64,000 bases of DNA from sequence record PP496441.1; one strand, written 5' to 3'. Positions 33,542 to 47,487 of this stretch are shown one piece after another. A program made the position numbers and the translations under genes. Each line of letters opens with the position of its first letter. Within the stretch, counting starts at the first letter, position 1. The notes under the pieces were generated by a model. That model was not told the DNA's origin, ran no database searches, and was given only the letters and a program-made list of their open reading frames with translations.

Positions 33542-35020
33542 ATGAAATCTGTAGCCGTTGACTACCAAAAGATAGCCAAGGAATGCCAGTGCACCGAGCT
33601 GCCTTCCAAGGTAAGAGTTACTCGTGCACGGGTCTATCCAAACTTGAGGACGTGCCTACTCTTCCTCAAGTACGATGCCAAAGGTGAACTGGTACAAGCC
33701 GAGATCACTGCGCCGTACGACACGTCCACCGAGCCAAAGGTGAGGGTGCTCAAGCACCCGGACAAGAAGTCCGACTTCCTTTCATTATACAGGGCGCTGA
33801 TCCGCCACCAGATCATACCCGAGTCTATTCCGAAGAAAGGTAACGGGATTGCACCAACGCTGGAGGTCATCGGCACACTGGTGAGCCTGCTGCCGGAACG
33901 GGATGTCGAAACCTTCCGTACGCTGACCCCGGCCATCCAGACTGGCAGCGTCATGTACGTCCCGCTGGTCACGTCCCGGCCAATGCCCATGGTGCAACAC
34001 TGGATACCTGTTGACCAGCATTCAGAGCTGGGCATGATCGAGCTAGTCGATACGGATAGCAAGCCTTTCCTTAATCAGTGGGTCAACAGGTTGAGCAACA
34101 CCGCCACTGGTTATGTGATCTACACCCCCGAAGGCTCACACGGTCAGGAACTAGCCTGCTTCCGGGTGCCCAATGTGCAAGGGGAGGAACTGTGTGTGGT
34201 CAAGAAGGTTGACTTCACCCTGACTGTTGCTCGCACGCTCAAGCCGGTACTGACTGTATCCACCAAGAGTACTCGGGCAGTGTCCCGCATTCCCCTACCC
34301 CACTATCTGATGCTACGCAATCACCACATCAAGGTGGGCACGGTTATTTCCCTGCGTCGTAACGACCGAGGTGGGTTGGTGTACCATGAGACGGTGGCCG
34401 AGGAAGGCATGACACCCCTCCCACTGTGCCCGCACTGCCACAGTGGGTCTGTGCTGCGAGGTAGTAGCAATGACGTGTACTGCAATAACGATTCATGCCG
34501 AGGCCTAGCCATTGTGCGACTTCGCTACATCTTGAACAACAAGCTGGACGTCAAGTACCTGAGCGACAATAAGGTAACGGCGCTGATCAATGACAAGCAG
34601 GACCTGTTCAGCTTGCTTAAGACCCCGACGCACCAGTTACGGCACAGACCTGGCTTTGGTGCACGTACCGTGGACGCACTGGAGGAGAAGCTTAACACTA
34701 TTGCCGGTCTTCCACTGCACACACTGGCCGAGATGTCCTGCGCTTTCTACAACGTGGGCGTGCCCCCACTGGATGAGATGGTGTTCAAGAAGATCTTTTC
34801 CGTTATGTCGCTTGACTACCTGAAAGCGCTGCCGTCTACCGGCAAGATGTACAGTCAGCTGCTCGACATCGAAGGTATCCGCAACAACCGCGCAGTGGCT
34901 TTCCTTGCTGGCTGGCCTGCATTTCAACAGTGGATGATAGACCTGAACGCTGCCCTACAGTCTCGCATCGCAATCTCCTCCACGGTAAATAACCCGAAAC
35001 AAATTCGAGGTGTGAAATGA
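33542..35020 (+). CDS. Degenerate LigA-like protein (OB fold, C4 zinc finger, HhH) lacking the KxDG catalytic motif
   Basis: RBS GGAGAA; VKKVDFTL...LKPVLTV and IKVGTVISLRR (OB); CPHCHS...YCNNDSC; PGFGARTV and LLDIEGI (HhH); YPNLRT at the expected EPKLDG position. Confidence 0.7.
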   Translation: MKSVAVDYQKIAKECQCTELPSKVRVTRARVYPNLRTCLLFLKYDAKGELVQAEITAPYDTSTEPKVRVLKHPDKKSDFLSLYRALIRHQIIPESIPKKGNGIAPTLEVIGTLVSLLPERDVETFRTLTPAIQTGSVMYVPLVTSRPMPMVQHWIPVDQHSELGMIELVDTDSKPFLNQWVNRLSNTATGYVIYTPEGSHGQELACFRVPNVQGEELCVVKKVDFTLTVARTLKPVLTVSTKSTRAVSRIPLPHYLMLRNHHIKVGTVISLRRNDRGGLVYHETVAEEGMTPLPLCPHCHSGSVLRGSSNDVYCNNDSCRGLAIVRLRYILNNKLDVKYLSDNKVTALINDKQDLFSLLKTPTHQLRHRPGFGARTVDALEEKLNTIAGLPLHTLAEMSCAFYNVGVPPLDEMVFKKIFSVMSLDYLKALPSTGKMYSQLLDIEGIRNNRAVAFLAGWPAFQQWMIDLNAALQSRIAISSTVNNPKQIRGVK

Positions 35021-35781
35021 ACAATCAAAACAGAACTCGTATCGCTGTGCTTGTCGGCGGCGGTCTGGACTCACATGCGTACATGGTATTGAAAGCCGAC
35101 CAGCCTCAGACAGACTTCATTCATGTGGACTACGGCCAGCGGGTTGCAGTAGCCGAGAGAAACGCCGTGTTGCAAATGGCTGAGAAGCTGGGCATTGCCC
35201 GCAGCCGGGTGTACACGCTGATCTGCAACAAGAAGAATCACATGCGCAAGGTCAATGACGGTGTGGGTGTGTTGTTTGGCACCGGCCCGGTCGAGATGGA
35301 CAATGCGTTTGTTAAGGGACGTAACCTGTTCCTGATTCAGAAGGCCATCGAGCTGGGCTACGGTCACGTGCACTTGACGCTGACCCAAGAGCGTGGCCGG
35401 ATGTTCCCCGATGCCGATCTGGCATTCGTCCAGCTGGTTGACAACCTGATGCACCGCAGTTATGACGTGAGGGTATCCGCCCCCTACATCATGGAAGACA
35501 AGCATCGGGTGATGTTCAAGGCGTATCGGCATTGCCCCGAGTTCCTCGATATGTCTTTCACGTGCTGGGTAGGTCCTTATGTGGAATGTGGCACGTGCCC
35601 GCACTGCGTCAAGAAGGAAAAGATTCGAGCCGAGATGATCGTTGAGAAGATTGAATACGATCTCAGCAAGGATGAACGTGAGGCGCAGTGGGAGCAAGTC
35701 AAGGCAGGCTACGGCGACGCGTTGAAGCCCGCTGAGACCATCAACATGAACATTCAGGTTGTTGACGGAGGACTGAAATGA
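35017..35781 (+). CDS. queC: QueC-like ATP pyrophosphatase (AANH), copy 1
   Basis: VLVGGGLDS (PP-loop variant), VDYGQR, VKGRNLFL, FPDA, SFTCW...CGTCPHC. Confidence 0.82.
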   Translation: MNNQNRTRIAVLVGGGLDSHAYMVLKADQPQTDFIHVDYGQRVAVAERNAVLQMAEKLGIARSRVYTLICNKKNHMRKVNDGVGVLFGTGPVEMDNAFVKGRNLFLIQKAIELGYGHVHLTLTQERGRMFPDADLAFVQLVDNLMHRSYDVRVSAPYIMEDKHRVMFKAYRHCPEFLDMSFTCWVGPYVECGTCPHCVKKEKIRAEMIVEKIEYDLSKDEREAQWEQVKAGYGDALKPAETINMNIQVVDGGLK

Positions 35782-36488
35782 ACAAGTTCTTAGGTTGGTT
35801 CAAGCGTCTGCTGGATAAGAAGCACAAGTCGATCACGATGACGTTGACCGACGCCGAAGGTAAGTTGGTCACCATCCACATACCGCAAGGTGCGGGTGTC
35901 GAATACACGCTCTCGAAGTCGGGCACCCACTTGAACGTCTCAGTTAAAGACGACGTCTTCATGTTGCGCACGAATGGCGCTGGAGGCGGTGGCAGTGGAA
36001 GTTCCAAGCCCGGTCTCAACGGTGGCCCCGGCCATACACCTATCCCCCGGTCCCCAAGCTTCACGGGCGCTGGTACGCCGAACTACGGTCACGCAGGCGA
36101 CCCGCCTGTTGGTGCTCAAGCTTCGTTCCCTATCGGCGCCCGAGCAACTGTTTCTGGTGGTGGGCGCGTTGGTGGCCTGTCAGGTGGAAGCGCAAACGGC
36201 ACAATGGCTGGTGGTGGAGATGGCTTCGTTCCCTCTCCAATCCGTAGCTCTGATCGAGCTTACCTGATTAGAGGTTTGTATTACGTCATCACGACGAAGA
36301 AGATAACGGGAGAGCAATACCCGATCCATGAGCTTCTGCATTGGGGTAAGAAGTCAATCGAACTCATGGGCAAGTTCTCCACCGTCCGAGACGCTATCGA
36401 CGAACTCAAATTGAAGACGGGTATCCCATTCGAAGACCTGACGGACTATCAGGTTGATTCCCTTCCCAAACGACTGTGCAAGCCTTGA
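35778..36488 (+). CDS. Hypothetical protein with a central Gly/Ser/Pro-rich low-complexity segment
   Basis: ATGA-coupled to QueC copy 1; GAGGGGSG...GGGDG tract. Confidence 0.7.
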   Translation: MNKFLGWFKRLLDKKHKSITMTLTDAEGKLVTIHIPQGAGVEYTLSKSGTHLNVSVKDDVFMLRTNGAGGGGSGSSKPGLNGGPGHTPIPRSPSFTGAGTPNYGHAGDPPVGAQASFPIGARATVSGGGRVGGLSGGSANGTMAGGGDGFVPSPIRSSDRAYLIRGLYYVITTKKITGEQYPIHELLHWGKKSIELMGKFSTVRDAIDELKLKTGIPFEDLTDYQVDSLPKRLCKP

Positions 36489-36526: not shown

Positions 36527-37345
36527 ATGACCACTGCGCCCCCAAAGATTATCGTTGCATTCAGCGCCGGTACAGATTCAACTACAGCGGCCTACTACTA
36601 TCGCAAGCTCGGCTATCAGGTAACGCTGGCCGTGTTCGATGACGGCGCATGCAACGATCCACTTGACCCTCTGTACGATCCGAACAAGCCGAAGGACTTG
36701 ACCAACTTCTCGGATGAGTTCTACGATTACGTACGGATTCACCAAGAGCACACGGAAGGCCATCTTCAGTTCGACTTCGTGGAGATTCGTTATCCGCAAC
36801 TCGCATTGCTGGAAGCCAACAAGACAGCCAAGCCCGGTCGGGACAATGCAGCAGCAGCAGAGGCTGACGGCTTGGGCTTCTGGGTCGGCTTCAAGGGCCT
36901 GATGGCAATGTTGCTGATGAGCCACGGCGCCGCCAATGGTTACGAGGCAGTAGTCTTCGGCCACATGCCGTACAACAACCATTACGAAGATGAGCTGCCC
37001 CAGAACTTCGAGCTGCTGCGTCAGTACATGGTTACGGCCTATGGCAGCCGAGTGGAAATTCCTCAGATCTACCACCCGTTCTATCGACCTAATTTCGATA
37101 CCAAGGAAAAGGTTATTGAGCTGGCGCAGGCAATCGGCGTGCCCTTGCGAGATACCTATTCGTGTCGCCGAGGTGAAGTAGAAACCCGAGGTATCCTCCT
37201 GCCACTTCTGCGTGGCGGTAACTCCAACTACGTGAGCCCCACCTACCGTTGGAAGCATTGTGGTACGTGTGAGAACTGTGTCGAACGCAAGCGAGCCTTC
37301 GCGGCGCTGGGCATGAAAGATCCTGCCCCTTATATGGAACATTGA
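36527..37345 (+). CDS. queC: QueC-like ATP pyrophosphatase (AANH), copy 2
   Basis: VAFSAGTDS, TKEKVIELA...GVPLRDTYSCRRG, HCGTCENCVERKRAF...DPAPY. Confidence 0.82.
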   Translation: MTTAPPKIIVAFSAGTDSTTAAYYYRKLGYQVTLAVFDDGACNDPLDPLYDPNKPKDLTNFSDEFYDYVRIHQEHTEGHLQFDFVEIRYPQLALLEANKTAKPGRDNAAAAEADGLGFWVGFKGLMAMLLMSHGAANGYEAVVFGHMPYNNHYEDELPQNFELLRQYMVTAYGSRVEIPQIYHPFYRPNFDTKEKVIELAQAIGVPLRDTYSCRRGEVETRGILLPLLRGGNSNYVSPTYRWKHCGTCENCVERKRAFAALGMKDPAPYMEH

Positions 37346-37346: not shown

Positions 37347-38363
37347 ATGGCCCTTTCAATCTGGCCGCTGACCGAAGGTGAACTCGGTCAGGGCCTCGTC
37401 AACGAACTGAATCGTACCAGCAAGGCGCTGGTGAACCGGAGTATGTGGTCTTTGCCATTGCTCCGGCGGTTGTTTTATCGGCGCACCGAGATTGGTGTCC
37501 CGGAGCTACTCCACGTCTGTACCAGCATTCATCGGGGCAAGACTTACTTCTGCCTGTTGGTGAACTTCCGAGACGTGGTGATGGGCAACCCCGAGCAATA
37601 CGGATGGGACCTAGCTGGCCGGTGGTTGTTCTACGATGTGGATCTGCTGGATACCCCGGAATTTAAACAGGTAAACGCGGCTATTCGTAAGGTGGCTACG
37701 GTCAACACGGTTACCTACGGTCAAGCATTCGTTCCGGATGAAGGTGGTATGGGGGAGGAGCACTGGATCAAGAAACTGAAAGGTAACTACCGCCCCCACA
37801 TCTTCGGCGAAAAGTCAAAACAGGTTATCGTCAGTCAGACCTGCGGACACGCGGCTACTCACGTGCTGACCGAGGCAGTGATGTCATTCGGTATCCAGCG
37901 CGCTGAGAGATTTCTCGCGGAAGGTCAGTCGGATGTCATGCCGGAGTTGTATGACCTACCCATGCAGCTAGCCGGTCTAGGCTCGATCCCCGGAACCCGG
38001 ATTGGCACCGTGTCGCTCACCTGCCGGGATACCCATGCGCTGATCGGTACCCTGTCGTTCTACGTTGTGGCGGGCTTGGGTCACAGTGATATCTTGTATA
38101 TGCACGAGATGCTGATTGATCCGGATCCGAAGTGGAAGCATCTATCGGTGGCCGTCAACTTGCACATTCAGGCAATCATGTATGTGCGCTATCTAAACAA
38201 CCGATCTGATCGGGCTTCGGACTTGGTTATCAACCTCGGATTCAACTTGGACGAGAAGTACAACACATACAAAGAGGTGTTCCGTCCGAACAAGTCCGAA
38301 ATGGAAATCTATACCGGCATGCACACCGAGCCAGGCGTCCCACTGTCCTGTTTCAAGGGGTAA
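37347..38363 (+). CDS. Divergent GNAT-fold protein, ATE1/Bpt/Fem-like (putative aminoacyl-tRNA transferase)
   Basis: C-terminal INLGFNLDEKYNTYKEVFRP resembles the ATE1/Bpt YLGY...YKxxFRP end. Confidence 0.45.
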   Translation: MALSIWPLTEGELGQGLVNELNRTSKALVNRSMWSLPLLRRLFYRRTEIGVPELLHVCTSIHRGKTYFCLLVNFRDVVMGNPEQYGWDLAGRWLFYDVDLLDTPEFKQVNAAIRKVATVNTVTYGQAFVPDEGGMGEEHWIKKLKGNYRPHIFGEKSKQVIVSQTCGHAATHVLTEAVMSFGIQRAERFLAEGQSDVMPELYDLPMQLAGLGSIPGTRIGTVSLTCRDTHALIGTLSFYVVAGLGHSDILYMHEMLIDPDPKWKHLSVAVNLHIQAIMYVRYLNNRSDRASDLVINLGFNLDEKYNTYKEVFRPNKSEMEIYTGMHTEPGVPLSCFKG

Positions 38364-38366: not shown

Positions 38367-39368
38367 ATGTACACTCCGTATTCCCAAAACAGTCTGATGC
38401 AATCGATCCCGCTGGATGACCAAGGTACATTCGCCCATCCACCGTACACGATGGAAGGAGAGTTCACCGACGTGTGGACGAATCCAAACCTATATGGATT
38501 CGTCAGCCTGTTGAACGGCCAGAGCAATAGCCGGGCATATCGAGACTGGATGACCACCCACAATCTTCCAGCCCTGTTCCTCGGTCCGCACCATGAAGAC
38601 AACTTCTGGTTTGAATTCAGCACTGGTCTCGATTCCAACTGCACGCTGGATTACAACGAGATCAACGTCCAAGGCAACCTGCAGGACTTCCTTGGGAGAT
38701 TGACGTCATCTCGCCGTCGCTCCGTGCTCAAGGCAAAGGAAACGGATACAATGATCCACAAGGCAGGCTCGGTAGCCAACTTCAACCTGTATCATCCGGT
38801 GGAGGGTAGGCTGTATAGTCTGACCGTGATTCACGAACGCCGGGTGATGAAAGATATTTCCGAGTTTATCGAATCGAAACTCTGGAGTATGAAGCATACG
38901 CCTACTGACCTCACGTACGGTGCATTCACCACTCTGATGGACTACATCCGGTTGAAGCAGCGAGATGACACGCCGCTGGGCCACCGGTTGCGCAACGTAC
39001 AGCTCTTGGTCATTCGAGATGAACGCTCCGGGTTTATCGTGTCAGTTCATCTGGTGGCGATCAACACGTTGAAAGATGATTCCATGAACCCCACCAAGAC
39101 GTACATGCACTCCTTCGCACGCATCACTGTTCTCCCTGCACGTATCGCCTTACTTGCGTTGATCAAGGCGGTTCAAGAGTTAAACGTCACCAGTCAGTAC
39201 GCGTCCCGTGCACTGGCGAAGATCGACTATCTTGATGTGAGCAACGTGGTGCTGTCCGAGCGAGAGCAGTACAAGTCGGACTTCTTAACCGGCAAATGCC
39301 AAGTGCGTGCGTGGGCGTCCCCGGCGCTGCTGGAACGGCAGTTACCTTTCGTTACGCCGATCCCGTAA
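38367..39368 (+). CDS. Divergent Fem/Acetyltransf_6-like dupli-GNAT protein
   Basis: DFLGRLTSSRRRSVLKA (Fem-type basic helix); C-terminal YLDV...YKSDF. Confidence 0.45.
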   Translation: MYTPYSQNSLMQSIPLDDQGTFAHPPYTMEGEFTDVWTNPNLYGFVSLLNGQSNSRAYRDWMTTHNLPALFLGPHHEDNFWFEFSTGLDSNCTLDYNEINVQGNLQDFLGRLTSSRRRSVLKAKETDTMIHKAGSVANFNLYHPVEGRLYSLTVIHERRVMKDISEFIESKLWSMKHTPTDLTYGAFTTLMDYIRLKQRDDTPLGHRLRNVQLLVIRDERSGFIVSVHLVAINTLKDDSMNPTKTYMHSFARITVLPARIALLALIKAVQELNVTSQYASRALAKIDYLDVSNVVLSEREQYKSDFLTGKCQVRAWASPALLERQLPFVTPIP

Positions 39369-39422: not shown

Positions 39423-40475
39423 ATGCAAGACTTCGATAAGATCATGATCGACAGTAGTTTGACATCAAATCTGGTGTACGCAGGCTTGGGTAGCTTGATC
39501 ACACCCCGTGCACTTGACCTGCTGATCGAACATCAGGCTGCACTGGAAAACGTATACGCCAATCTGGAAACAGCGTATCAGATTACCCCACCCTTCCCCT
39601 GTGAAGCTGCATTCAATTCCCCTGACAAAGATCCTGTGCTGGTCGCCGACTATCTGAATGCTACTCCCGCCATCCGTTGCGGAGAGCTGGCTGGATTCGA
39701 GGCAAAGCCCGGCAGTTACTACCACGCCCCCGCTGCTGGCATCTGCCCGGAACATCGCATCGACGTACGAGGTATGTCTTTGCGTGAGTTCGATCACTAT
39801 CTGGTTGAGCGGGCGGAGGTGTCACGGATCACTACCAATCTGGTGGCCGACAAGTTCCGCTGTGAGACTCATGTGTACAAAGTGGATGAAGATCATATCC
39901 TGATCCATGACGCCGAACGAGTTGGGATCAGCCAGACGGACTTCCGCCGCATGTGGGCGCAGACCCGCCGCCGGGAAATCGCTGATAATTATCTGCAGCA
40001 CATGCCCATCGAAGACTCCGCCAAGGATGATCAGGTGGTGCGACTGATCAACGAAGACGTAGCACGGGTGTTCGCCCAGAACGTCGACTACGACCGCATG
40101 ATTCCGCCCGAGCTGATCTTCGATGGTCAGGGCAAGCCGGTGCTGACCGTGCTGAAAGATTGCAACGCCAAGGTATTGGGCATTGGTGTGTACGTCATCT
40201 ACAAGTCAGCTGACCCAGAGCATGACAGCGAACTGCACTGGCGTGGCGCTTTCTACGATCACGAAGATCCGCGTACTGCATCCATGGGCATTGAACACGC
40301 TCTGGTTGCCAGCGCACTGCACACAGCGTACGCCTGCAACGCAGTTCTCTATCTGACCAAGGCACCGAAGTCCGTGTGTGACGCATGGAAGACGGAAGTG
40401 CACCAAGGTTACGGGCTGGTCCGTAATGCGATGCCGGAACTGTCTGACACCCCTTACATTCTGGCTATCCAGTAA
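39423..40475 (+). CDS. Divergent ATE1/Bpt-like GNAT-fold protein
   Basis: AFYDHEDPRTASMGIEHAL...VLYL resembles ATE1/Bpt FYDP...SLG...L...YLG. Confidence 0.45.
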   Translation: MQDFDKIMIDSSLTSNLVYAGLGSLITPRALDLLIEHQAALENVYANLETAYQITPPFPCEAAFNSPDKDPVLVADYLNATPAIRCGELAGFEAKPGSYYHAPAAGICPEHRIDVRGMSLREFDHYLVERAEVSRITTNLVADKFRCETHVYKVDEDHILIHDAERVGISQTDFRRMWAQTRRREIADNYLQHMPIEDSAKDDQVVRLINEDVARVFAQNVDYDRMIPPELIFDGQGKPVLTVLKDCNAKVLGIGVYVIYKSADPEHDSELHWRGAFYDHEDPRTASMGIEHALVASALHTAYACNAVLYLTKAPKSVCDAWKTEVHQGYGLVRNAMPELSDTPYILAIQ

Positions 40476-40508: not shown

Positions 40509-42593
40509 ATGAAATCCGTGAACCCCATCTTCAAGCACGTTCCCCAGTTCGACTGGCCTGTCATCCCTCGTGCACAGTGGGAAGAGATCATCAAGGGAAA
40601 AGAGCATGTGATGTTCGACTCCTTCTCGCAGCTCGCTCAAGTGTTGGCTATCCCGGTGAGCAGTTACCAGTTCTACTTCGAAGATGGGTCCACGTTGTTC
40701 GCCGGTCCCGAAGCAACCTTCACCGCCGCGCCGTACCCGCTGTATCAGGACCTTGAATTCGTCCTGACCCCTGACGAGACGTTGGTGCCGGGTCTTGCAC
40801 TGGATACCAAACCGTGGGGCCTGTACACCGACGAATGGGTGGACAACTACGAAGGTGCGGACAAGGAAGACATCGGCAACAAGACCGGGTTCGAATTCAT
40901 TCCGCTGTCGGACGCCTTGAAACTGGTGGTCCTCAACACGGAGACCATGCAGCTCCAGTACACTGCCATCGAGAGCTTCACGTACGACGGCGTGACTTAC
41001 GTATACCTGCTGGCCGATGGCGTGTGCTGGGTACTGGCGGGCAAGTCCGGTGGTCTGGTTGCCAGCGAGCATGACAAAGGTGCTGCGTTCATCATGGTGT
41101 CCCATCCCGAGTTCGCCGGGTGCAGCGTAGACAACATGTATCCAAGTGAGTTCGGTGAAGCGGAAGCGACGTTCTACGTTCAAGACGAGGAACACAATTA
41201 CCTGGACGCGGCTAACCGCATCTTCGAGGAAGCCAAGGACGTAGGCGCTGGCACGTTCCTGACCATTGAGACCGGTGATGGATTGCCGACCGCGCTGGCG
41301 TACAACCTGCGGTACAGTGATGTGGCCCACGTTAACCTGCCGATGCACAACATCCACCAGTTCACTTCTCTGCACGTACGACTGGGTGAGACTCCTAACT
41401 TTTCCGAGGCCCCGGAAGCGTGCCGCATGAAAGAGGTGATGGAGTATCTGGCGGACCCTGAGTCCCCGGTAGATCATTACTGGTCGGCCATCATGGTACT
41501 GGAGAAGAACTTCCCCGGTTTCGCCGACGCCCTGAAAGACTCCAGTGTCCCGACCCGTGACATCGTGCACTCCAAACAGGCGTTCAGCTTGGAGATCGAT
41601 CGCCAGTTCGGCAAGGAAGTGGCAAGCAAGATCGGCCTGAACACTGGCGTATTCGCCCAAGTGAAAGACCGTGATGAGTGGCTGACCCGTCAAGACGATT
41701 TTCCTACCGACAAGGTGGCCGTCAAGTACAACACCAAACACTTCATCGGCATCTTCGACAAGGACGAGGTATCGAATTCCATCAACATGTGGCTGGCCGG
41801 TCAACCCGGAGAGTCGCTGATGATCGAAGAGTACTTCGGTGAGGGCAATCAGGAATTCAACCTGTGCTATGTGATCAACGAAGAGTTTGTGCAGCCGACG
41901 CTGTTCCTGTGCGAAGTCAACAAGATCCTCGGTAATGACACCGGCGGCAAAGGTGGCAACACGCTGGCCTGCCATGATGCTCGTATTAACAAGTACCCTG
42001 AGTTCTTCGAGCCGGTAAATAATGCGCTTGCTAACCTGCATGAGCACGTGGAAGGTGTGAAGGGCTGGGTTGACCTGAGCTTCATGGTCCGCGACGGCAT
42101 CCCTTACTTCACAGAGTGGTGCATTCGCATCGGCTGCTCCAACAACGCCACCATCGTGCGCCAGATGGAGACCCCTCTCGACGTTCTTTTGACTAACGTG
42201 GTTAACAAGGTGCATACCGAGCTGTCTTGGAAGCACTCCATGTCTGTTAGCGTGGACATCTACAGCATGCCGCTGTCCGCAGGCAATGATGCCAACATGC
42301 AGTTCACCGACTCGCTGACCACTCCGGTAGAGATGGTGTCCCCACTCAATCTGGAATTGGCAGCGGAGAGTTTCTTCGACCCGATTGATTCGGCCTGGAA
42401 CGCGGTGTACGACGGCTACATTGTCGAGGCGTACAACCGATATGGCACCGTCTCGGGGTATTCCACCAACTGGAACTTCGCCTGCAATGCGGCGTACAAT
42501 CACTTGAAAGATCAGTCGGTGTTGTACGGGGCATACCGCGAAGCGCCTGCCCACCACGACCCACTGACTCTGTTCCCTTTCCTCAAGGCGTAA
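40509..42593 (+). CDS. ATP-grasp amide ligase, PurD (GAR synthetase)-like, with an N-terminal extension
   Basis: VAVK, MIEEYFGEGNQEF, CEVNKILGNDTGGKGG (cf. PurD DHKR...GDTGPNTGGMG), GIPYFTEWCIRIG (cf. ExNxRFG). Confidence 0.72.
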   Translation: MKSVNPIFKHVPQFDWPVIPRAQWEEIIKGKEHVMFDSFSQLAQVLAIPVSSYQFYFEDGSTLFAGPEATFTAAPYPLYQDLEFVLTPDETLVPGLALDTKPWGLYTDEWVDNYEGADKEDIGNKTGFEFIPLSDALKLVVLNTETMQLQYTAIESFTYDGVTYVYLLADGVCWVLAGKSGGLVASEHDKGAAFIMVSHPEFAGCSVDNMYPSEFGEAEATFYVQDEEHNYLDAANRIFEEAKDVGAGTFLTIETGDGLPTALAYNLRYSDVAHVNLPMHNIHQFTSLHVRLGETPNFSEAPEACRMKEVMEYLADPESPVDHYWSAIMVLEKNFPGFADALKDSSVPTRDIVHSKQAFSLEIDRQFGKEVASKIGLNTGVFAQVKDRDEWLTRQDDFPTDKVAVKYNTKHFIGIFDKDEVSNSINMWLAGQPGESLMIEEYFGEGNQEFNLCYVINEEFVQPTLFLCEVNKILGNDTGGKGGNTLACHDARINKYPEFFEPVNNALANLHEHVEGVKGWVDLSFMVRDGIPYFTEWCIRIGCSNNATIVRQMETPLDVLLTNVVNKVHTELSWKHSMSVSVDIYSMPLSAGNDANMQFTDSLTTPVEMVSPLNLELAAESFFDPIDSAWNAVYDGYIVEAYNRYGTVSGYSTNWNFACNAAYNHLKDQSVLYGAYREAPAHHDPLTLFPFLKA

Positions 42594-42596: not shown

Positions 42597-43760
42597 ATGA
42601 GCACTCCATTCCAAGAGTTCACCCTAGAAGGGTGGATTCGCTACATGAGAGATGAAAGCATCATCTGGCGCGCGTACGCTGATGGTCATCCGGATAAGGT
42701 CGAGTTCAGCCCGGAGTGGCGTGACGAGATGTATCGGTTGATGGTGCAGTTCAAAGATCTGCTGCCGATGTCGTTTTCCAATCCGGTGTACGGCTTCACT
42801 GAAGGTTGGCTGGAAGGGCTCGGACTCCAGCCCTTTTATGGCGATGATCCGTTCAATCCGATGGTGCAACCGCTTAGCCACCCTCTGGTGCATGTGGGGC
42901 TTCCGTTTACTCTGAGCGAGCTGACGGCGGGCGTATGGGACTGTCAGTCCCTGAGCGCTCACCTGGAGCGTCCGCTGCTGGTCGATACATTCGAACCGAT
43001 CCCAGTGCCATCTATTAGCCTGGACGCTTACAAAGCCGTCCTGACCGTACGGGACCGGGAAGAGATCGTGATGAGTGCGGGAACCCCGGTGAACTACTTC
43101 CTCTGGTTGAATAGTCCGATCACCGAACTCAAAGACGACTTCGACGTTTATCTGGCCAGCCTGACCAAGAAGCGCCGCTACAAAGTGAAGCAGGCACTGG
43201 CGACAGTGGGCACCGAAGAGAACCCGGCTATCAGCGTCAGTACTGGATCTCGTTTCGGCGAAGGGTTGTTGTCCGATCAGGTGAACAGCATCCTCGCGAC
43301 TTTCGAAGATCCGGTGGACATAGAGTGCATGCTTCTTCAGCTGCTGTTCGGGGTGGCAACCTGCAATACCCATCCGCATCTTGTCGATCTGGTTTGTGCA
43401 GACCAGCAGTTGGGGATCTTCATCAAGCGCAACGGCCACACGATGAATTTCCTCTACAACCGTGACCCGGACAACCGCGCTGACTCAGGCATCAACCTGC
43501 TGACCCAGTACGTGCGCCATCTGCACATGAACCGCCCGGAAGGTGTGATGTACGTGGACCCGACATGTCGATATCGGCCTGACGAGGACAGTATGAACAC
43601 CTACAAGCGGGTGATCACCAACGAGAACCGGTATCACCCAATGCCGTTCGTCTCGGCTGATCCTGCGCACATCGAAGGTGTTATTACCCCGGCGTTCATT
43701 GCAGGTCATTGGCAGATGTCGGCGTCCAATGGCCCGGCCAATCCTGAGATGATGGAGTAA
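42597..43760 (+). CDS. Fem/Acetyltransf_6-like dupli-GNAT protein
   Basis: DVYLASLTKKRRYKVKQAL; C-terminal SGINLL...YVD...YKR. Confidence 0.55.
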   Translation: MSTPFQEFTLEGWIRYMRDESIIWRAYADGHPDKVEFSPEWRDEMYRLMVQFKDLLPMSFSNPVYGFTEGWLEGLGLQPFYGDDPFNPMVQPLSHPLVHVGLPFTLSELTAGVWDCQSLSAHLERPLLVDTFEPIPVPSISLDAYKAVLTVRDREEIVMSAGTPVNYFLWLNSPITELKDDFDVYLASLTKKRRYKVKQALATVGTEENPAISVSTGSRFGEGLLSDQVNSILATFEDPVDIECMLLQLLFGVATCNTHPHLVDLVCADQQLGIFIKRNGHTMNFLYNRDPDNRADSGINLLTQYVRHLHMNRPEGVMYVDPTCRYRPDEDSMNTYKRVITNENRYHPMPFVSADPAHIEGVITPAFIAGHWQMSASNGPANPEMME

Positions 43761-43762: not shown

Positions 43763-44710
43763 ATGGCAAAGCACAAGGTCAAAAGGTTGGAAATCAACCA
43801 CATCTACGACTTCTACCCGTTGTATCAGGTGATGTACGGGCGTGGCATGGAGACCAAAGCGTTCGAGGTCTCCAAGTTCGCCAAGATGGTGCTGGACTTC
43901 GAAGCATCAACCAGTACTCGCCGGAAGTGGGACGTGCTGGAACCTTTCAGCGGTATCAGCGAGCATGAACACTTCTTCGCTGCTACTGGCCTGAACATCG
44001 AGCACTACACCGGCATGGACATCGTGGTTCCAGATGGGGCCAAAAACGTCATTCAAGGTGACATCATCACCGACACCCTTCCGTTTCACGTCAACGCGGT
44101 GTTCGCCTTCTACTACAGCTTGCAGAATGTACGGGACGCCAAGACTGGCATGCACACGCGGGAAAAGCTGGTGGAGTTCTTCGACAACATCCTCGGCCAT
44201 CTGCAAGTCAATGCGAACAAGAGCCGTATGCCCGCAGTGTTCGCTTTCCACCTTGACCAGCCTGAAGACCCTAATTACTATCTGACGTCCCGTGCCGACG
44301 TTGGAGGTGAACAGTCATGGACCGCACCCGCGTGTGGTCTGCTGGGGCAGTGGGTCAAGTGCAAACCGACCGACACTCTGGAAGTGAAGTGCAATCTGGA
44401 CACCTGGTACAACCGTGTGCAGTGCACCGCGTACGATCAGGCGGAGGATATCCAGATTCTGGTAAATGGGCGAGTAGTGGCGACCGTTGAGATCGAACAG
44501 CCGTTCACCCATCGGGTCTGGACCGAGCATGAGGTGATCGACATCCTGCGGGGTCTGGACTACAATCTGCACTTCCACATGTACAACGGCACCATCTCCA
44601 ATTACGACTTCTTGATGACCCGTTTGGAAGACAAGCCCGTTCCCGGCGATGAAGAGGCTAATACTAATCAGATGACAACTGATATGCTGGTTGTCGTTAA
44701 TCCGAGGTAA
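43763..44710 (+). CDS. Class I SAM-dependent methyltransferase, copy 1
   Basis: DVLEPFSG (motif I variant), MDI, IQGDI, VNAVFAFYYSL. Confidence 0.65.
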   Translation: MAKHKVKRLEINHIYDFYPLYQVMYGRGMETKAFEVSKFAKMVLDFEASTSTRRKWDVLEPFSGISEHEHFFAATGLNIEHYTGMDIVVPDGAKNVIQGDIITDTLPFHVNAVFAFYYSLQNVRDAKTGMHTREKLVEFFDNILGHLQVNANKSRMPAVFAFHLDQPEDPNYYLTSRADVGGEQSWTAPACGLLGQWVKCKPTDTLEVKCNLDTWYNRVQCTAYDQAEDIQILVNGRVVATVEIEQPFTHRVWTEHEVIDILRGLDYNLHFHMYNGTISNYDFLMTRLEDKPVPGDEEANTNQMTTDMLVVVNPR

Positions 44711-44712: not shown

Positions 44713-45630
44713 ATGGCTAAGCCCAAGATCCCTACACGAACCATCCCCACGTTGTACCAAGACTGGGGGTTGTACAGCGCCATCTGCGAACTGCCGCAGG
44801 AGACGATGCTGATGATGTCGCGCTTCGTGGCAGACCGGACCATCGAACATGCCGAGCGCCATGACCTGGAAAGTGTGGCGATCATGGAGCCCTTTAGCGG
44901 GCCGATCCCGTATTACGAGCCAGACATCCGAAGCTTCCTGACTCGCGCCCGTGTTGACCTGGATACGTACGATCATGTCGAGTACCTTGATCACGGTGGA
45001 TTGTCGGAAGACAACAATATCATCATCGGTGACATCACCACCATCGACCTGAAACAGAAATACGACGTCATCTACGGCAGTTACGGCAGCTTGGCCTGCC
45101 TGCTGCTGGATCACACGCACAACAAAGCGTATGAGAAGTCACACGCAGCTCTGGTCAACATTCGCGAGCACCTGAAACCCAACGGCATCTTCGTCCTGAA
45201 CGCCAACGGATCCAGCGAAAGCCTGCTGAATAACCTGTTGAACTCCGATGAGCCGGATCAAGAGATTCGCGTCCGTCCGGGATCGCAGTTGGGCAAGGCG
45301 TTCCGAATCAAACCAGACAGTAACGCGCTGCTTCGTTTCTCCTACAACGTGGAGTACGACCGACGCACCACCTGCACCATGTGCCATTACAGCGATATGG
45401 TGCTGTCTGTAAATGGGGTTGACATCCAGCGCTGGGAGGTGGAATCCCCGACGTATCTTGCGCCGCTGGATGAACCCGAACTAATTCGAATGGCAGGTAT
45501 GGCTGGTTTCAATCTGGACAACACCGAGTTCTACGGATTGGACACCACCGGTTATCCTGCCTTCTTCAAAATGGATACGGTCTGCGACGGGTCATGGTCA
45601 CCCGCCGAGTTCGTAGTCTTTCGCACCTAA
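44713..45630 (+). CDS. Class I SAM-dependent methyltransferase, copy 2
   Basis: IMEPFSG, IGDITTIDLKQKYDVIYGSYGSL, EHLKPNGIFVL. Confidence 0.8.
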   Translation: MAKPKIPTRTIPTLYQDWGLYSAICELPQETMLMMSRFVADRTIEHAERHDLESVAIMEPFSGPIPYYEPDIRSFLTRARVDLDTYDHVEYLDHGGLSEDNNIIIGDITTIDLKQKYDVIYGSYGSLACLLLDHTHNKAYEKSHAALVNIREHLKPNGIFVLNANGSSESLLNNLLNSDEPDQEIRVRPGSQLGKAFRIKPDSNALLRFSYNVEYDRRTTCTMCHYSDMVLSVNGVDIQRWEVESPTYLAPLDEPELIRMAGMAGFNLDNTEFYGLDTTGYPAFFKMDTVCDGSWSPAEFVVFRT

Positions 45631-45640
45631 CGAGGTTCCT

Positions 45641-46876
45641 ATGAGCGTTATCATCCCCACCGTAGCGATGGAGAGTGGTCAGCCAGACATGATCATTCAA
45701 GGCTGTTCCACGGGTCGCCTCTCTATGGCCGAGCCTAACGAGAGCGCCAAACCCAAGTCTTCCAAGAAGCTGTACGAACGTGAAGACCTGATGGCGTACG
45801 ACAGCGAGTCGGAGCACTGGCAGAAGCAGTTGGCCCGCCGCTACGCGCATCACGGTGAGATGGTCGGCGTGTTGAACAACGTCGAGGTGGTGCCGGAAGC
45901 CACCTATCAGAACTTCGACATGAAGATCACCCCGTACACCGCGCAGTTGATGGACCAGAACGACCCCAACTGCCCGATCCGTTTGCAGTACATGCCGACC
46001 AACAAAGAGCTGGAGTCTATTCAGCGCGAAGAGACCATGCACAACGAGCTGGGCGAGGAAGAGGACACCATCCCCGGTACCTCGGTCGTGCACCGCTACC
46101 CGCGTCGCGTCTTGTTCCTGACCACTACCCAATGCGCCAGCTTCTGCCGTTACTGCACCCGTGCACGCATCGTCTCCCACGGCGGCGAAGCGGCGATCAC
46201 CAAGAAGCACCTTGACGCCAGCATCGACTACATCGCCGGGAACAAGGACATCGAAGACGTGCTGCTGTCCGGCGGTGACCCGTTCATCCTCCCAGACAAC
46301 AAGCTCGACGAGATCCTCGGTCGTATCCGCGCCGAAGCACCTCACGTTCGCTTCCTGCGTATCGGTAGCCGACTGCCGGTACAGATGCCGACCCGTATCA
46401 CTCCAGAGCTGTGCGAGATTCTGGAACGCCACAACGTCAACATGGTCAACATCCATGTGAACCATCCGAAAGAAGTAACCCCTCTGCTGGCCTCCCGGAT
46501 GAAGATGTTGCGCAAAGCTGGCGTGATGATCGGCAATCAGGCCGTCATGCTGAAAGGCGTGAACGACTCCATCGAGGTGATGACCGAGCTGTGCTTGCGT
46601 ATGGTCGAGATGGGCGTGCGTCCGTACTATGTCTACTCCAACGATCCGGTGGCGCAGGCTGCGCACTTCACCGTGTCGCTGAAAGAGATGCTGAACATCA
46701 ACGAGGGTATGCGCGGCTTCCTGTCTGGCCCGGCTATGCCAACCTTCGTGGTAGACGGTGTGGGTGGCTTGGGCAAGATGCCGGTGCAGAAAGAGTACGT
46801 CAGCTTCGATAAGAACGGCGGTATCTTCGCCCAGAACTTCGAAGGGAAAACGGCCCGCATGCCCCATCTGGAATAA
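45641..46876 (+). CDS. kamA: Lysine 2,3-aminomutase (KamA family radical SAM/PLP enzyme)
   Basis: HRYPRRVL, CASFCRYCTR (CxxxCxxC), LLSGGDP, RIGSR, HVNHP, NQAVMLKGVND, RPYYVYSND, FVVDGVGGLGKMP (PLP Lys). Confidence 0.93.
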   Translation: MSVIIPTVAMESGQPDMIIQGCSTGRLSMAEPNESAKPKSSKKLYEREDLMAYDSESEHWQKQLARRYAHHGEMVGVLNNVEVVPEATYQNFDMKITPYTAQLMDQNDPNCPIRLQYMPTNKELESIQREETMHNELGEEEDTIPGTSVVHRYPRRVLFLTTTQCASFCRYCTRARIVSHGGEAAITKKHLDASIDYIAGNKDIEDVLLSGGDPFILPDNKLDEILGRIRAEAPHVRFLRIGSRLPVQMPTRITPELCEILERHNVNMVNIHVNHPKEVTPLLASRMKMLRKAGVMIGNQAVMLKGVNDSIEVMTELCLRMVEMGVRPYYVYSNDPVAQAAHFTVSLKEMLNINEGMRGFLSGPAMPTFVVDGVGGLGKMPVQKEYVSFDKNGGIFAQNFEGKTARMPHLE

Positions 46877-47026
46877 GCGTTCCAGACACTCCCTAGTTCC
46901 AGTGTACAAGCTTCAAATGCCCCATTTGCGCTAGGTCCTGTAAATGGGGTTGCTTATCCGCGTTGCAATGTGTTACGCTGGATTGGACCCATATTATTCC
47001 GATAACCGAACCACCGAGGTATCACC

Positions 47027-47458
47027 ATGAGCTTCTCCGTAACCGTAGCTGCACAGACCATCGCTGCCCCCGAGTCGCTGGGTAGCCCGAAAGGCATCAG
47101 CGTCCTCGAAGCCAACGAAGGCTTTGCTGTCATCGAATTCCAACGTCCTCGCGCCTCGAAGCGTGACCAGATCGCCGTCCCTCGCGTCCAGATCCTCTCC
47201 CTGAGCCACGGCAGCGCCGACGGCGACAGCGGTTACCTGATCGCTCAAGGCATGGCCGGTGTGGCCGACGAATTCGAAGCCGCAAGCTTCACCATCGAAG
47301 GCAACGTTGCCACGTTCGTGACCGCTGAAGGCGCCACTATCGAAACCGACGCACGTCTTACCCGTATCCTCGCTTACGGCGTGGAAGAGGGCGAAAACAG
47401 CCTGCTGGGTAAGCCGGAAAAGAAAGTAAAACCGAAAGCAAGCACCAAGAAGAAGTAA
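47027..47458 (+). CDS. Hypothetical protein with a Lys-rich tail (highly expressed codon style)
   Basis: RBS GAGGT; followed by a terminator. Confidence 0.8.
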   Translation: MSFSVTVAAQTIAAPESLGSPKGISVLEANEGFAVIEFQRPRASKRDQIAVPRVQILSLSHGSADGDSGYLIAQGMAGVADEFEAASFTIEGNVATFVTAEGATIETDARLTRILAYGVEEGENSLLGKPEKKVKPKASTKKK

Positions 47459-47487
47459 TCAACACGGCCCGCGCCGGTTGAACTAAG

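Follow-up and report, generated by a model that had tools for sequence, protein, structure and literature searches.

A predicted lysine 2,3-aminomutase encoded with amide-forming and QueC-like enzymes in Pseudomonas phage vB_PpuM-Pori-4

Beta-lysine has three known fates: modification of EF-P, osmolyte synthesis and fermentation. In clostridial lysine 2,3-aminomutase (LAM) Arg134 interacts with the substrate carboxylate, Asp293 and Asp330 with the epsilon-ammonium group and Lys337 with PLP, while in glutamate 2,3-aminomutase the two lysine-binding aspartates are replaced by Lys/Asn. The known 7-deazaguanine systems of phages combine FolE, QueD, QueE and QueC, Gat-QueC or ArcS with DpdA, and their products are dPreQ0, dADG, dG+, dPreQ1 and derivatives. 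To date, sets of FolE, QueE and QueC in phages have been connected with DNA modification (PMC6884629; PMC10516641). Two enzymes that join 7-deazaguanines to amines are relevant here: ArcS places L-lysine on preQ0, whether the latter is part of tRNA, a nucleoside or a 5'-monophosphate (PMC11298593), and Cap9, of the QueC family, ligates CDG to an amine at a protein N-terminus (bioRxiv 10.1101/2025.04.06.647259). Here we describe a phage aminomutase that is ordinary in itself and whose gene setting is unusual.

The aminomutase and its substrate

The window, by which we mean the whole stretch of 64,000 nucleotides that was analysed, is 100% identical to positions 124001-188000 of PP496441.1, the record of Pseudomonas phage vB_PpuM-Pori-4 (host Pseudomonas putida, genome 202.6 kb), and the phage origin given in the preliminary description is thereby confirmed. 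Pori4_00199 is labelled 'hypothetical protein' in the deposited record. The gene starts with ATG, has a GAGG Shine-Dalgarno sequence 7 nt upstream and, as had been claimed, is a single intact ORF; its 411-residue product scores 274.9 bits against TIGR00238, 'KamA family radical SAM protein', for which the cut-off is 199.2. The motifs named earlier are all in place (CASFCRYCTR at residues 165-174, SGGDP at 210-214, YSND at 332-335 and FVVDGVGGLGK at 369-379) and, given a TIGR00238 score above the cut-off, reflect homology rather than chance. An antisense ORF of 447 aa at 45566-46909, which carries no family signal, was set aside as a shadow ORF. Scans for promoters and terminators returned sites no more numerous than in shuffled sequence, and public sequencing runs gave weak, partial matches only.

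The protein aligns with Clostridium subterminale LAM (PDB 2A5H) with a phmmer E value of 4.5e-79. Residue equivalences were numbered from the printed phmmer alignment, in which Cys165, Cys169 and Cys172 of the phage enzyme correspond to LAM Cys125, Cys129 and Cys132, Arg174 to Arg134, Asp335 to Asp293, Asp372 to Asp330 and Lys379 to Lys337; the SGGD motif is Ser210-Asp213. The position equivalent to Asp330 is occupied by Asp in the phage protein, by Thr in BlsG (an arginine 2,3-aminomutase by its PGAP name, from a blasticidin-type cluster) and by Glu in E. coli EpmB.

The closest relatives, 59-61% identical, are Burkholderiales genes within kamA-kdd-kamDE-thioesterase-kce lysine-degradation operons. 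In a maximum-likelihood tree Pori4_00199 forms a clade, with support of 100/100, with KamAs of Dechloromonas and Rhodoferax that head kamA-kdd-kamDE-kce operons. A phylogeny against KamA, EpmB, AblA and Eam had been proposed as a check; our tree covers the first three of these families, and in it the phage protein groups with the kam-operon KamAs, with EpmB distant and the AblA references outside. The retained aspartates, the clade and the operon context of the relatives together make the assignment of Pori4_00199 as a lysine-specific 2,3-aminomutase, first suggested on the strength of the two aspartates, a well supported prediction from sequence.

The protein scores 312.3 bits against TIGR03820 (lys_2_3_AblA), below the cut-off of 525.4. 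Operon-embedded bacterial KamAs score alike (314.7 and 320.6 bits), and so this model misses the whole clade; because enzymes whose context supports their role as KamAs fall short in the same way, the low score is not evidence against lysine specificity. The models for glutamate and arginine 2,3-aminomutase gave 301 against a cut-off of 650 and 293 against 600, respectively. At its N-terminus the phage enzyme carries an extension of about 45 residues, variable in sequence and absent from the bacterial relatives, and residues 25-34 (10 aa) are deleted in the homologue of phage KoPa-5. Comparison with phage Peetri gives a dN/dS of 0.16.

P. putida is aerobic and clostridial KamA is oxygen-labile. 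Concern on this point is eased by the observation that the phage has a radical-SAM enzyme of its own in QueE, and that the sister clade has facultative and aerobic hosts.

The phage encodes none of the three known routes for beta-lysine. A search of the whole genome for EpmA or EF-P, proposed earlier as a check, returned no homologue of EpmA/GenX or EF-P in the 202.6 kb (phmmer, six-frame ORFs, E of 0.1 or better), and the same six-frame phmmer approach found no AblB-like ORF. KamD/KamE, Kdd and Kce are absent from the cluster (Pfam/NCBIfam) and from the phage genome (phmmer, annotation). The remark in the preliminary description that such partners are missing nearby can thus be extended genome-wide. 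A GNAT encoded at 26998-27822 of the window, and a small GNAT encoded directly after KamA in Vibrio phages, match generic GNAT models and not AblB.

The operon and its distribution

Pori4_00199 lies at the end of 12 co-oriented, closely spaced genes (Table 1) located between helicase and topoisomerase II genes. The gene content is identical in phages Peetri and KoPa-5 (dN/dS 0.07-0.24), and the operon is under purifying selection in nine phages. These nine phages and the P. putida host are kept in the public collection CEPEST. Six of the 12 proteins lack a confident assignment.

Table 1. Genes of the Pori-4 operon, with coordinates in the window
Gene	Coordinates	Strand	Features
Pori4_00188	33542..35020	+	First operon gene; LigA-like zinc finger and helix-hairpin-helix; N-terminus of ~290 aa without match
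Pori4_00189	35017..35781	+	QueC-family PP-loop ATPase 1; GGGLDS P-loop, C-x7-CxxCxxC zinc motif, 7-deazaguanine-binding residues
Pori4_00190	35778..36488	+	Gly-rich low-complexity core
Pori4_00191	36527..37345	+	QueC-family PP-loop ATPase 2, divergent; SAGTDS P-loop, insertion, C...CGTCENC zinc motif
Pori4_00192	37347..38363	+	Candidate tandem-GNAT (Mig-14/Acetyltransf_6/FemAB-like)
Pori4_00193	38367..39368	+	'FLxxLTxxRRxxVxKA' motif, common to 00196
Pori4_00194	39423..40475	+	Near-orphan
Pori4_00195	40509..42593	+	PurD-like ATP-grasp amide ligase (residues ~230-690); N-terminal 230 aa without match
Pori4_00196	42597..43760	+	Probable GNAT-fold FemAB/CelD-like acyl or aminoacyl transferase
Pori4_00197	43763..44710	+	Paralogue of 00198; 'EPFSG' motif by eye
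Pori4_00198	44713..45630	+	Paralogue of 00197; weak NCBIfam methyltransferase match (E 0.016); dN/dS 0.09
Pori4_00199	45641..46876	+	KamA family radical-SAM/PLP enzyme, 411 aa; final gene of operon

The first protein, Pori4_00188, matches positions 394-497 of the LigA model TIGR00575 (E 1.5e-6), with no recognisable adenylation domain, and its homologue in Vibrio phage GR7B (GR7B_120, with a counterpart in GR11A) has DNA_ligase_OB and HHH matches. A deep homologue search returned its own cluster only, and its dN/dS is 0.07. From these matches it is probably a DNA-binding component.

The operon encodes two PF06508 (QueC-family) proteins, both under the QueC equivalog cut-off. Pori4_00189 scores 68.6 bits against PF06508 and 61.8 bits against TIGR00364 (cut-off 150.3), and so is not a canonical QueC by score. 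It is 26-28% identical to phage QueC and Gat-QueC, and its sole match in the PDB is Cap9 (9NTO_B, E 2.6e-8), of which the equivalents of Arg86 and Asp117 are kept and Tyr115 is replaced by Phe. Pori4_00191 matches PF06508 over its C-terminal half only (47.1 bits), with 23.7 bits against TIGR00364 and an E value of 2.7e-14 against phrog_1550. Elsewhere in the genome Pori-4 encodes QueE (phrog_2076, 4.5e-41) and FolE (PF01227, 3.8e-39), as does GR7B. The pair of QueC-family enzymes and the genomic FolE and QueE, which the preliminary description had missed, point to a 7-deazaguanine product. The Vibrio phage clusters add a true QueC (GR7B_118, above the equivalog cut-off) and an ArcS-like domain (GR7B_119, a DUF5591/ArcS match with 28.2 bits against 26 for PF17884 and an E value of 9.4e-12 for NF040592); no ArcS-like domain was found in the whole Pori-4 genome.

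QueD was detectable nowhere in the genome (Pfam, PHROGs, phmmer), and the host could supply it. No DpdA/TGT-like transglycosylase was found among Pfam and PHROG matches in the cluster or beside QueE and FolE, nor by phmmer in the whole genome with the DpdA of Gordonia phage Sour and with Quinobequin-P09 gp42, a hypothetical protein taken as DpdA from its position only; a very divergent DpdA could escape such a search, and entry at the nucleotide level is conceivable. Both negative results weigh against a destination in DNA. The DNA of these G3 jumbo phages gave an 'extremely low' yield with a standard phage-DNA kit (PMC7616413), which is a weak hint in its favour. Literature searches returned no chemical analysis of DNA from these phages, and we found no paper that links aminomutases to phage DNA modification or deazaguanines, nor one on the biology of GR7B and GR11A.

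The strongest candidate for activation of the beta-lysine carboxylate is Pori4_00195. It matches TIGR00877 (purD) with an E value of 2.4e-7 and the PurD structures 1VKZ and 2XCL with E of ~0.06, and Atlas feature matches to viral GARS_A clusters reach 0.95.

Pori4_00196 is probably GNAT/FemAB-like, an assignment based on language-model leads, a motif and Foldseek matches of E > 0.01 from low-confidence models, each of them below significance alone. The Atlas lead is Acetyltransf_6/FemAB (0.93), the motif is the invariant 'YLASLTKKRRYKV', and the model (pLDDT 49.5, pTM 0.54) gave Foldseek matches to the GNAT superfamily only, with E of 0.03-0.3. The top matches are the tRNA-dependent peptide synthases Sbb17 and Sba18, the latter solved with streptothrisamine. 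A deep search returned five homologues. Pori4_00192 has no HMM match, and its Atlas feature matches (0.96-0.94), which we treat as a lead only, include a viral cluster also matched by 00196. Pori4_00193 may belong to the same GNAT-like superfamily since it shares a motif with 00196, with an hhalign probability of only 9% for residues 99-126 against 00196 residues 176-203.

The paralogy of Pori4_00197 and Pori4_00198 (hhalign 94.7%) makes them the sole neighbour pair confirmed by profile-profile comparison. Pori4_00197 has no Pfam or PDB match, and the joint profile of the two found no PDB relative; a Rossmann methyltransferase-like fold is possible. Pori4_00190, which had no family matches in profile searches, shows the lowest constraint in the cluster (78% amino-acid identity to Peetri, dN/dS 0.18). 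Pori4_00194 has two representatives among 1.84 billion proteins, the distant one in the same gene order on contig L020, and its AF2 model (pLDDT 43) is unusable.

Vibrio phages GR7B and GR11A also carry the ATP-grasp ligase, the 00196 family and KamA together, and metagenomic scaffold L036 has them in the same order. Partial contigs L020 and L035 have the same order over the genes covered and both end short of KamA. On IMG/VR contig L013 an independently acquired KamA lies three genes from a PurD-like ATP-grasp. Homologues of 00195 are found in GR7B/GR11A, L013, L036, L020 and L035, and those of 00196 in GR7B/GR11A, L035, L020 and, in two copies, L036; 00193 has a homologue on L020, and 00197 on L035 and, weakly, on L036 just upstream of KamA. 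In three lineages the operon lies among replication genes (helicase, topoisomerase II, DnaB). The suggestion made earlier that beta-lysine feeds the adjacent ligases gains from this conserved order, with PurD-like ATP-grasp, 00196 family and KamA together in four phage lineages. No recognisable PP-loop gene was found in the 7.4 kb upstream of the module on L036 or in the L013 neighbourhood, which indicates that the beta-lysine module can occur without QueC genes. When IMG/VR, JGI metagenomes and GTDB genomes were scanned for patterns of the ATP-grasp family nothing was returned, and a KamA scan of IMG/VR returned one locus; the operon is rare and restricted to phages. The KamA of huge-phage LR756500 was excluded from the system, having a different neighbourhood with no ATP-grasp.

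A proposed use for beta-lysine

The position of Pori4_00199 in a conserved operon of amide-forming and QueC-like genes suggests that beta-lysine is probably a building block of an undescribed modification. On balance we favour the idea, with moderate confidence, that the phage makes beta-lysine and ligates it into a 7-deazaguanine-based hypermodification, probably of its own DNA. The jumbo phages would have acquired the aminomutase from a proteobacterial catabolic KamA lineage, and in the infected cell it would convert free L-lysine to beta-lysine. The PurD-like ligase would then activate the beta-lysine carboxylate as an acyl phosphate and join it to an amine, and the GNAT/FemAB-like 00196, possibly with 00192 and 00193, may attach additional acyl or aminoacyl groups or cap them. 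A 7-deazaguanine is the most likely acceptor; phage FolE and QueE would supply 7-carboxy-7-deazaguanine for it, and QueD would presumably be a host enzyme. The pathway would end in a positively charged 7-deazaguanine bearing beta-lysine. This base would probably reside in phage DNA and protect it from host nucleases; a destination in DNA is suggested by the LigA-like DNA-binding protein that starts the operon and by the flanking helicase and topoisomerase II genes.

More tentatively, we propose as a possibility that in Pori-4-like and GR7B-like jumbo phages the guanine of the DNA is replaced or decorated with a previously unknown beta-lysine-bearing 7-deazaguanine, without a recognisable DpdA. 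The substituent might be a short chain of beta-lysyl or aminoacyl units with a cap added by GNAT or methyltransferase-like enzymes, and its assembly might involve a QueC/Cap9-like or ArcS-like enzyme, the PurD-like ATP-grasp ligase and FemAB-like transferases. If true, no purine hypermodification of DNA that bears an amino acid would have preceded it, and a lysine aminomutase would for the first time have a role in nucleic-acid modification; a beta-lysyl-7-deazaguanine in DNA would extend phage hypermodification from amino-acid-decorated thymidines to purines. Such a cationic base would likely resist restriction and CRISPR nucleases, and the pathway would offer new enzymes for DNA functionalisation, namely QueC homologues that accept amines, a PurD-like ligase for beta-lysine and possibly transferases that depend on tRNA.

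Instead of a DNA base the operon might make a free small molecule, for example a beta-lysine peptidyl-nucleobase or oligo-amide comparable to streptothricin or to blasticidin-type compounds, which might target the host or competing phages and bacteria, or might serve as a cofactor or counter-ion. We consider this unlikely, although it accounts for several features. A KamA-type aminomutase with ATP-grasp and tRNA-dependent FemAB-like ligases is typical of peptidyl-nucleoside and streptothricin-type pathways, the 00196 model has Sbb17 and Sba18 as its best Foldseek matches and BlsG derives from a blasticidin-type cluster. The failure to find DpdA in the genome and the occurrence of the module without QueC genes on L036 and L013 would also fit. 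Against it stand the LigA-like OB/Zn/HhH DNA-binding protein that opens the operon and the location among replication genes in three lineages, and no exporter or self-resistance gene was seen. In addition, the phage FolE/QueE/QueC sets described so far are linked to DNA modification (PMC6884629; PMC10516641).

It is less probable again that the target is a protein, through either EF-P-like beta-lysylation or a Cap9/QatC-style deazaguanylation of a protein amine, for host takeover or for jamming QatABCD or type IV CBASS defence. Pseudomonas EF-P carries Arg32, which is rhamnosylated by EarP, and so there is no lysine there to beta-lysylate; the genome, moreover, lacks an EpmA/GenX or EF-P homologue. 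QueC-family enzymes do modify proteins in defence systems (PMC13329287), GNAT and ATP-grasp enzymes often act on proteins (PMC7824862) and the sole solved relative of 00189, Cap9, conjugates CDG to a protein N-terminus. Yet 00189 is equally related to the QueC and Gat-QueC of DNA-modifying phages, and the searches revealed neither a Cap10/TGT-like nor a QatB-like partner.

In the thymidine hypermodification of phage M6 a radical-SAM isomerase acts on a group that is already attached. By analogy the aminomutase might use a lysyl or aminoacyl group on a base or nucleotide in place of free lysine, a reading that we judge improbable. The residues for free lysine (equivalents of Arg134, Asp293 and Asp330) and the PLP lysine (Lys337) are all kept at 60% identity to catabolic enzymes that use free lysine, and M6-type enzymes are absent among the tblastn matches. 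The N-terminal extension, lacking in bacterial relatives, could be taken in favour of this reading, but it is variable and has lost 10 residues in KoPa-5. ArcS-type enzymes place alpha-lysine on preQ0 first (PMC11298593) and an aminomutase could follow, although an ArcS-like gene is missing from Pori-4. A role as a plain auxiliary metabolic gene, in lysine catabolism as an energy source or in synthesis of the osmolyte N-epsilon-acetyl-beta-lysine, is very improbable despite the catabolic nature of the closest relatives and the GNAT genes of Pori-4 and, right after KamA, of the Vibrio phages, since kamD/kamE/kdd/kce are absent from the phage, both GNATs fail to match the AblB model and the genes to which the linkage is conserved encode ligases, not catabolic enzymes.

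Comparison with known systems

We return to the favoured proposal, in which beta-lysine would become part of a modified 7-deazaguanine. With the catabolic KamAs, represented by the 2A5H enzyme and the Burkholderiales operons, Pori4_00199 shares its family, the Fe-S cysteines, the SGGD motif and the four substrate and PLP residues and, with the Burkholderiales enzymes, the identity of 59-61% and the 100/100 clade. It differs in being phage-encoded, with the variable extension of ~45 aa, and in its linkage to ATP-grasp, GNAT-like and QueC-like genes in place of downstream catabolic genes.

The EpmB (YjeK)/EpmA pair offers a parallel, in that a KamA-family enzyme makes beta-lysine for an ATP-dependent ligase that joins it to an amine. 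EpmB is nevertheless on a distant branch (30% identity), with Glu at the Asp330 site, and Pori4_00199 scores 222.8 against a cut-off of 369.3 for the EpmB model TIGR03821. The candidate ligase of the phage is an ATP-grasp enzyme, whereas EpmA is a class II aaRS paralogue. The AblA/AblB pair resembles the Vibrio phage version, where the aminomutase adjoins a GNAT, but the AblA references from Bacillus and Peptoclostridium are outside the phage clade and the phage GNATs do not match AblB.

Like the phage 7-deazaguanine systems, Pori-4 encodes FolE, QueE and QueC-family proteins and has genes of the pathway among replication genes. Unlike them, it has no detected DpdA or QueD and both of its QueC homologues score below the cut-off; PMC6884629 and PMC10516641 do not deal with the additional aminomutase, ATP-grasp and GNAT-like genes. 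Cap9 and QatC belong to bacterial defence operons (type IV CBASS and Qat) and act on a partner protein, for which no gene is present here. A CDG-beta-lysine amide would need the chemistry of Cap9, in which an amine takes the place of ammonia and attacks an ATP-activated CDG carboxylate.

The ArcS/RaSEA archaeosine pathway provides a precedent for lysine on a 7-deazaguanine, even at the level of the 5'-mononucleotide (PMC11298593), and the catalytic domain of ArcS is present in the sister clusters of the Vibrio phages, though not in Pori-4. The archaeal lysine is a transient handle, removed by a radical-SAM enzyme that is not a KamA. In contrast, the presence of a lysine-isomerising enzyme and of further ligases in the phage operon suggests that here the amino acid is kept and elaborated.

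The aminomutase and its substrate

The window matches positions 124001-188000 of PP496441.1, the 202,632 bp genome of Pseudomonas phage vB_PpuM-Pori-4, with 100% identity. Pori-4 belongs to a set of nine Estonian jumbo myoviruses of Pseudomonas putida that are closely related to each other (collection in PMC7616413). Pori4_00199, deposited as a 'hypothetical protein', is a single intact 411-codon ORF whose ATG is preceded, 7 nt away, by a GAGG ribosome-binding site. It scores 274.9 bits against the KamA-family model TIGR00238 (curated cut-off 199.2), matches Pfam Radical_SAM and LAM_C, and has a sole solved relative, the lysine 2,3-aminomutase of Clostridium subterminale (2A5H; E 4.5e-79). The motifs cited in the preliminary description are all in place: CASFCRYCTR (residues 165-174), SGGDP (210-214), YSND (332-335) and FVVDGVGGLGK (369-379). 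Aligned with 2A5H, the cluster cysteines C125/C129/C132 become C165/C169/C172, R134 becomes R174 and the PLP lysine K337 becomes K379. In comparison with the related phage Peetri (dN/dS 0.16) the catalytic core is near-invariant and substitutions lie mostly in the C-terminal tail and N-terminal extension; within that extension the KoPa-5 enzyme has a 10-residue deletion. The 447-aa ORF that spans the entire gene on the opposite strand matches no family and is best regarded as a shadow ORF.

Pori4_00199 falls below all NCBIfam equivalog cut-offs (AblA-type lysine, 312 versus 525; glutamate, 301 versus 650; arginine, 293 versus 600; EpmB, 223 versus 369), which by itself would leave the substrate open. 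In a set of 5.8 billion proteins its nearest homologues come from bacteria (Burkholderiales and Lysobacter), measure about 393 aa and are 59-66% identical. Those of Dechloromonas and Rhodoferax are the first genes of operons ordered kamA-kdd-hypothetical-kamD/kamE-thioesterase-kce, in which kdd encodes 3,5-diaminohexanoate dehydrogenase, kamD/kamE beta-lysine 5,6-aminomutase and kce a BKACE protein; the operon as a whole represents the classical lysine degradation route. Since these context-validated KamAs have similar sub-threshold scores, the missed AblA-type cut-off reflects the seed of the model and not function.

The suggested phylogeny was carried out by maximum likelihood with PGAP-named references: AblA of Bacillus and Peptoclostridium (each adjoining AblB), the arginine 2,3-aminomutase BlsG of Kitasatospora, E. 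coli EpmB (adjoining efp) and a Rhizobium AblA-like-2 gene (adjoining GenX and EF-P). The Pori-4 protein, two Vibrio phage proteins, the Lysobacter genes and the kam-operon genes form one clade with 100/100 support. In the alignment both side-chain Asp sites are kept in every lysine enzyme, and the site of D330 is Thr in BlsG and Glu in E. coli EpmB. Glutamate 2,3-aminomutase has Lys/Asn in place of the two Asp. As had been claimed, Pori4_00199 keeps both Asp residues (D335 for D293, D372 for D330 of 2A5H). The Asp pair and the shared clade with kam-operon enzymes support the earlier reading of lysine to beta-lysine conversion, and we consider the protein very probably a functional L-lysine 2,3-aminomutase.

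The operon and its counterparts in other phages

Pori4_00199 is the last of 12 co-oriented genes (Pori4_00188 to 00199) that overlap or lie only a few bases apart. Upstream is a divergent UvrD-type helicase; two small genes and then the topoisomerase II subunits follow downstream, and just past these a J-domain protein (N-terminal DnaJ) is encoded. Peetri and KoPa-5 have the same genes in the same order, and all 12 are under purifying selection (dN/dS 0.07-0.24). Public data contain extremely few relatives of the operon proteins; in a set of 1.84 billion proteins, 00194 has just two representatives. No family could be assigned to 00190 or 00194. The Vibrio homologue of the first gene, 00188, also matches the ligase OB fold, and a complete NAD-dependent ligase is encoded elsewhere in the window. 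The least conserved gene is 00190 (78% amino-acid identity to Peetri).

00189 is a QueC-family PP-loop enzyme (Pfam, 68.6 bits; QueC equivalog, 61.8 versus a cut-off of 150.3). Its sole solved relative is Cap9, a QueC-family enzyme of defence systems (9NTO_B; E 2.6e-8). The equivalents of the deazaguanine-holding residues R86 and D117 are kept and Y115 is Phe; identity to QueC and Gat-QueC from phages known to modify DNA is 26-28%. 00191 is a second, more divergent family member. 00195 is a PurD-like ATP-grasp ligase (residues ~230-690). Language-model leads and an invariant YLASLTKKRRYKV motif point weakly to 00196 being a probable GNAT-fold FemAB/CelD-like transferase; Foldseek matches of a low-confidence model are all to the GNAT superfamily (E 0.03 to 0.3), with Sbb17/Sba18 at the top. 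Still weaker signs hint at the same superfamily for 00192 and 00193. 00197 and 00198 are diverged tandem paralogues (hhalign 94.7%) and faintly methyltransferase-like: an 'EPFSG...GD' pattern resembles Rossmann methyltransferases, with no supporting Pfam or PDB sequence match.

Clusters syntenic with the operon, also between helicase and topoisomerase II, occur in the Vibrio coralliilyticus phages vB_VcorM_GR7B and GR11A (~200 kb; KamA 50% identical to that of Pori-4). Their order is LigA-like, 335-aa protein, two QueC-family genes, 340-aa protein, 00196 homologue, 00195 homologue, KamA and small GNAT. An 18-kb metagenomic phage-like scaffold (L036; KamA 60% identical) follows the Pori-4 order, with 196-like, 195-like ATP-grasp, second 196-like, 197-like and KamA genes, then AAA, DEAD and DnaB helicase genes. 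Two short contigs carry 193-194-195-196 (L020) and 195-196-197-198 (L035). In a 231-kb IMG/VR contig (L013) KamA falls outside the Pori-4 clade and was thus acquired separately; a PurD-like ATP-grasp gene is three genes away from it, and topoisomerase II is adjacent. That contig also encodes a gyrase B piece and a SET-domain protein. The KamA of uncultured phage LR756500 (462 kb) was discarded as a further case, its neighbourhood being unrelated. The shared gene order marks the ATP-grasp ligase and the 196 family as recurrent partners of phage KamA. It lends support to the earlier proposal that beta-lysine feeds the adjacent ligases, whose substrate it likely is.

Coordinates of the features discussed
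Sequence	Coordinates	Strand	Feature
Window	1-1121	-	Complete NAD-dependent ligase, apart from 00188
Window	33542-46876	+	Operon, Pori4_00188 to 00199
Window	33542-35020	+	00188: LigA-like zinc finger and helix-hairpin-helix; adenylation domain not recognisable; N-terminal ~290 aa without assignment
Window	35778-36488	+	00190: long glycine-rich low-complexity core flanked by two short ordered ends
Window	43763-45630	+	00197 and 00198
Window	45641-46876	+	Pori4_00199, aminomutase
Window	45566-46909	-	Antisense ORF
Window	51650-52342	+	J-domain protein
PP496441.1	194422-198693 (L018 12523-16794)		QueE-like radical-SAM and FolE genes, flanking a clamp-like 408-aa protein, beside DNA polymerase
PP496441.1 (L015)	26846-28012, 41914-42477, 47245-48333		Nucleotide-metabolism enzyme set, outside the window
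GR7B (L003)	8040-9047		ArcS-like DUF5591 protein
GR7B (L003)	16116-16595		Small generic GNAT, directly 3' of KamA
L013	118-972		Gyrase B C-terminal piece with intein splicing-domain remnant
L013	9415-9843		142-aa SET-domain protein, directly upstream of KamA

A possible connection to 7-deazaguanine

Outside the window Pori-4 encodes QueE (phrog_2076, E 4.5e-41) and GTP cyclohydrolase I, FolE (PF01227, E 3.8e-39). The pair is similarly arranged in GR7B and in Phage NCTB, the latter not among the KamA tblastn matches. With these genes the phages could drive synthesis of 7-carboxy-7-deazaguanine (CDG), QueD presumably being supplied by the host. One GR7B QueC homologue exceeds the equivalog cut-off (185.1 versus 150.3). 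Next to it lies the 335-aa protein, which has matches to DUF5591 (28.2 versus 26 bits) and to the model of the ArcS alpha subunit, NF040592 (E 9.4e-12), and bears a PCAPDKPY motif; Pori-4 has no counterpart of this protein or of the GNAT trailing KamA. QueC genes are not near the beta-lysine module in L036 and L013.

Thermococcus ArcS loads L-lysine onto preQ0 that is part of tRNA, of the free nucleoside or of the 5'-monophosphate, the last of these efficiently (PMC11298593). In Cap9 the QueC mechanism serves to couple the carboxylate of CDG with a non-ammonia amine (bioRxiv 10.1101/2025.04.06.647259; PMC13329287). Experimental precedent therefore exists for both routes by which a lysine-type amine could be attached to a 7-deazaguanine, and putative genes for both co-occur in operons with phage KamA. 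No DpdA (a TGT-like DNA transglycosylase), other TGT-like protein or QueD is recognisable anywhere in the Pori-4 genome; entry into DNA could be through a very divergent transglycosylase among the unassigned proteins, which make up half of the operon, or by incorporation at the nucleotide level.

Elsewhere in its genome Pori-4 has an enzyme set often tied to exclusion or replacement of a canonical nucleotide: a homologue of thymidylate synthase (388 aa, including an insertion of ~100 aa), a 5'-deoxynucleotidase-like protein with an HD domain and a dUTPase_2-like pyrophosphohydrolase of 362 aa. A standard phage DNA kit gave extremely low yields for some phages, and DNA of the G3 jumbo phages, including Pori-4, was taken on the columns of another kit (PMC7616413). 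This anecdotal hint could mean unusual DNA chemistry, or simply size.

Proposed pathway and comparison with known systems

We propose that FolE, host QueD and QueE would yield CDG, which QueC-family enzymes would convert or conjugate. KamA would provide beta-lysine, and the ATP-grasp ligase and GNAT-like enzymes would make the amide bonds. The product would be a cationic 7-deazaguanine bearing beta-lysine, most likely ending in phage DNA. We lean slightly towards this layered explanation as a whole; the deazaguanine adduct in DNA is rated somewhat less likely than not. Weak points of the proposal are that DpdA and QueD were not detected, that Pori-4 lacks the ArcS-like gene and that L036 and L013 show the beta-lysine module apart from QueC genes.

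Sbb17/Sba18, the closest structural matches of 00196, are aminoacyl-tRNA-dependent peptide synthases of streptothricin-type pathways; a free small molecule containing beta-lysine is nevertheless an unlikely product. Protein modification, or counter-defence through deazaguanylation, is less likely still. Searches with GenX/EpmA, an AblB fragment and two EF-Ps against every six-frame ORF (60 aa or longer) of the whole genome gave nothing better than E 0.1. In Pseudomonas, EF-P carries Arg32 and is rhamnosylated by EarP, so the host would also lack a target for beta-lysylation. That the aminomutase acts on a lysyl group already attached seems improbable. Plain catabolic or osmolyte metabolism is the least credible alternative: kamDE, kdd and kce are absent from the Pori-4 family scans and annotation, and the reported lack of EpmA, AblB and lysine-fermentation partners near the gene holds genome-wide for EpmA, EF-P and AblB.

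Our full-text literature search found no link between aminomutases and phage DNA modification or phage deazaguanines, and two papers on phage deazaguanines do not mention aminomutase or ATP-grasp genes (PMC6884629; PMC10516641). Pori4_00199 is a new member of a known enzyme family. The system around it corresponds neither to any use of beta-lysine described so far nor to any described 7-deazaguanine pathway of phages, and there is a realistic chance that it represents a new class of DNA hypermodification.
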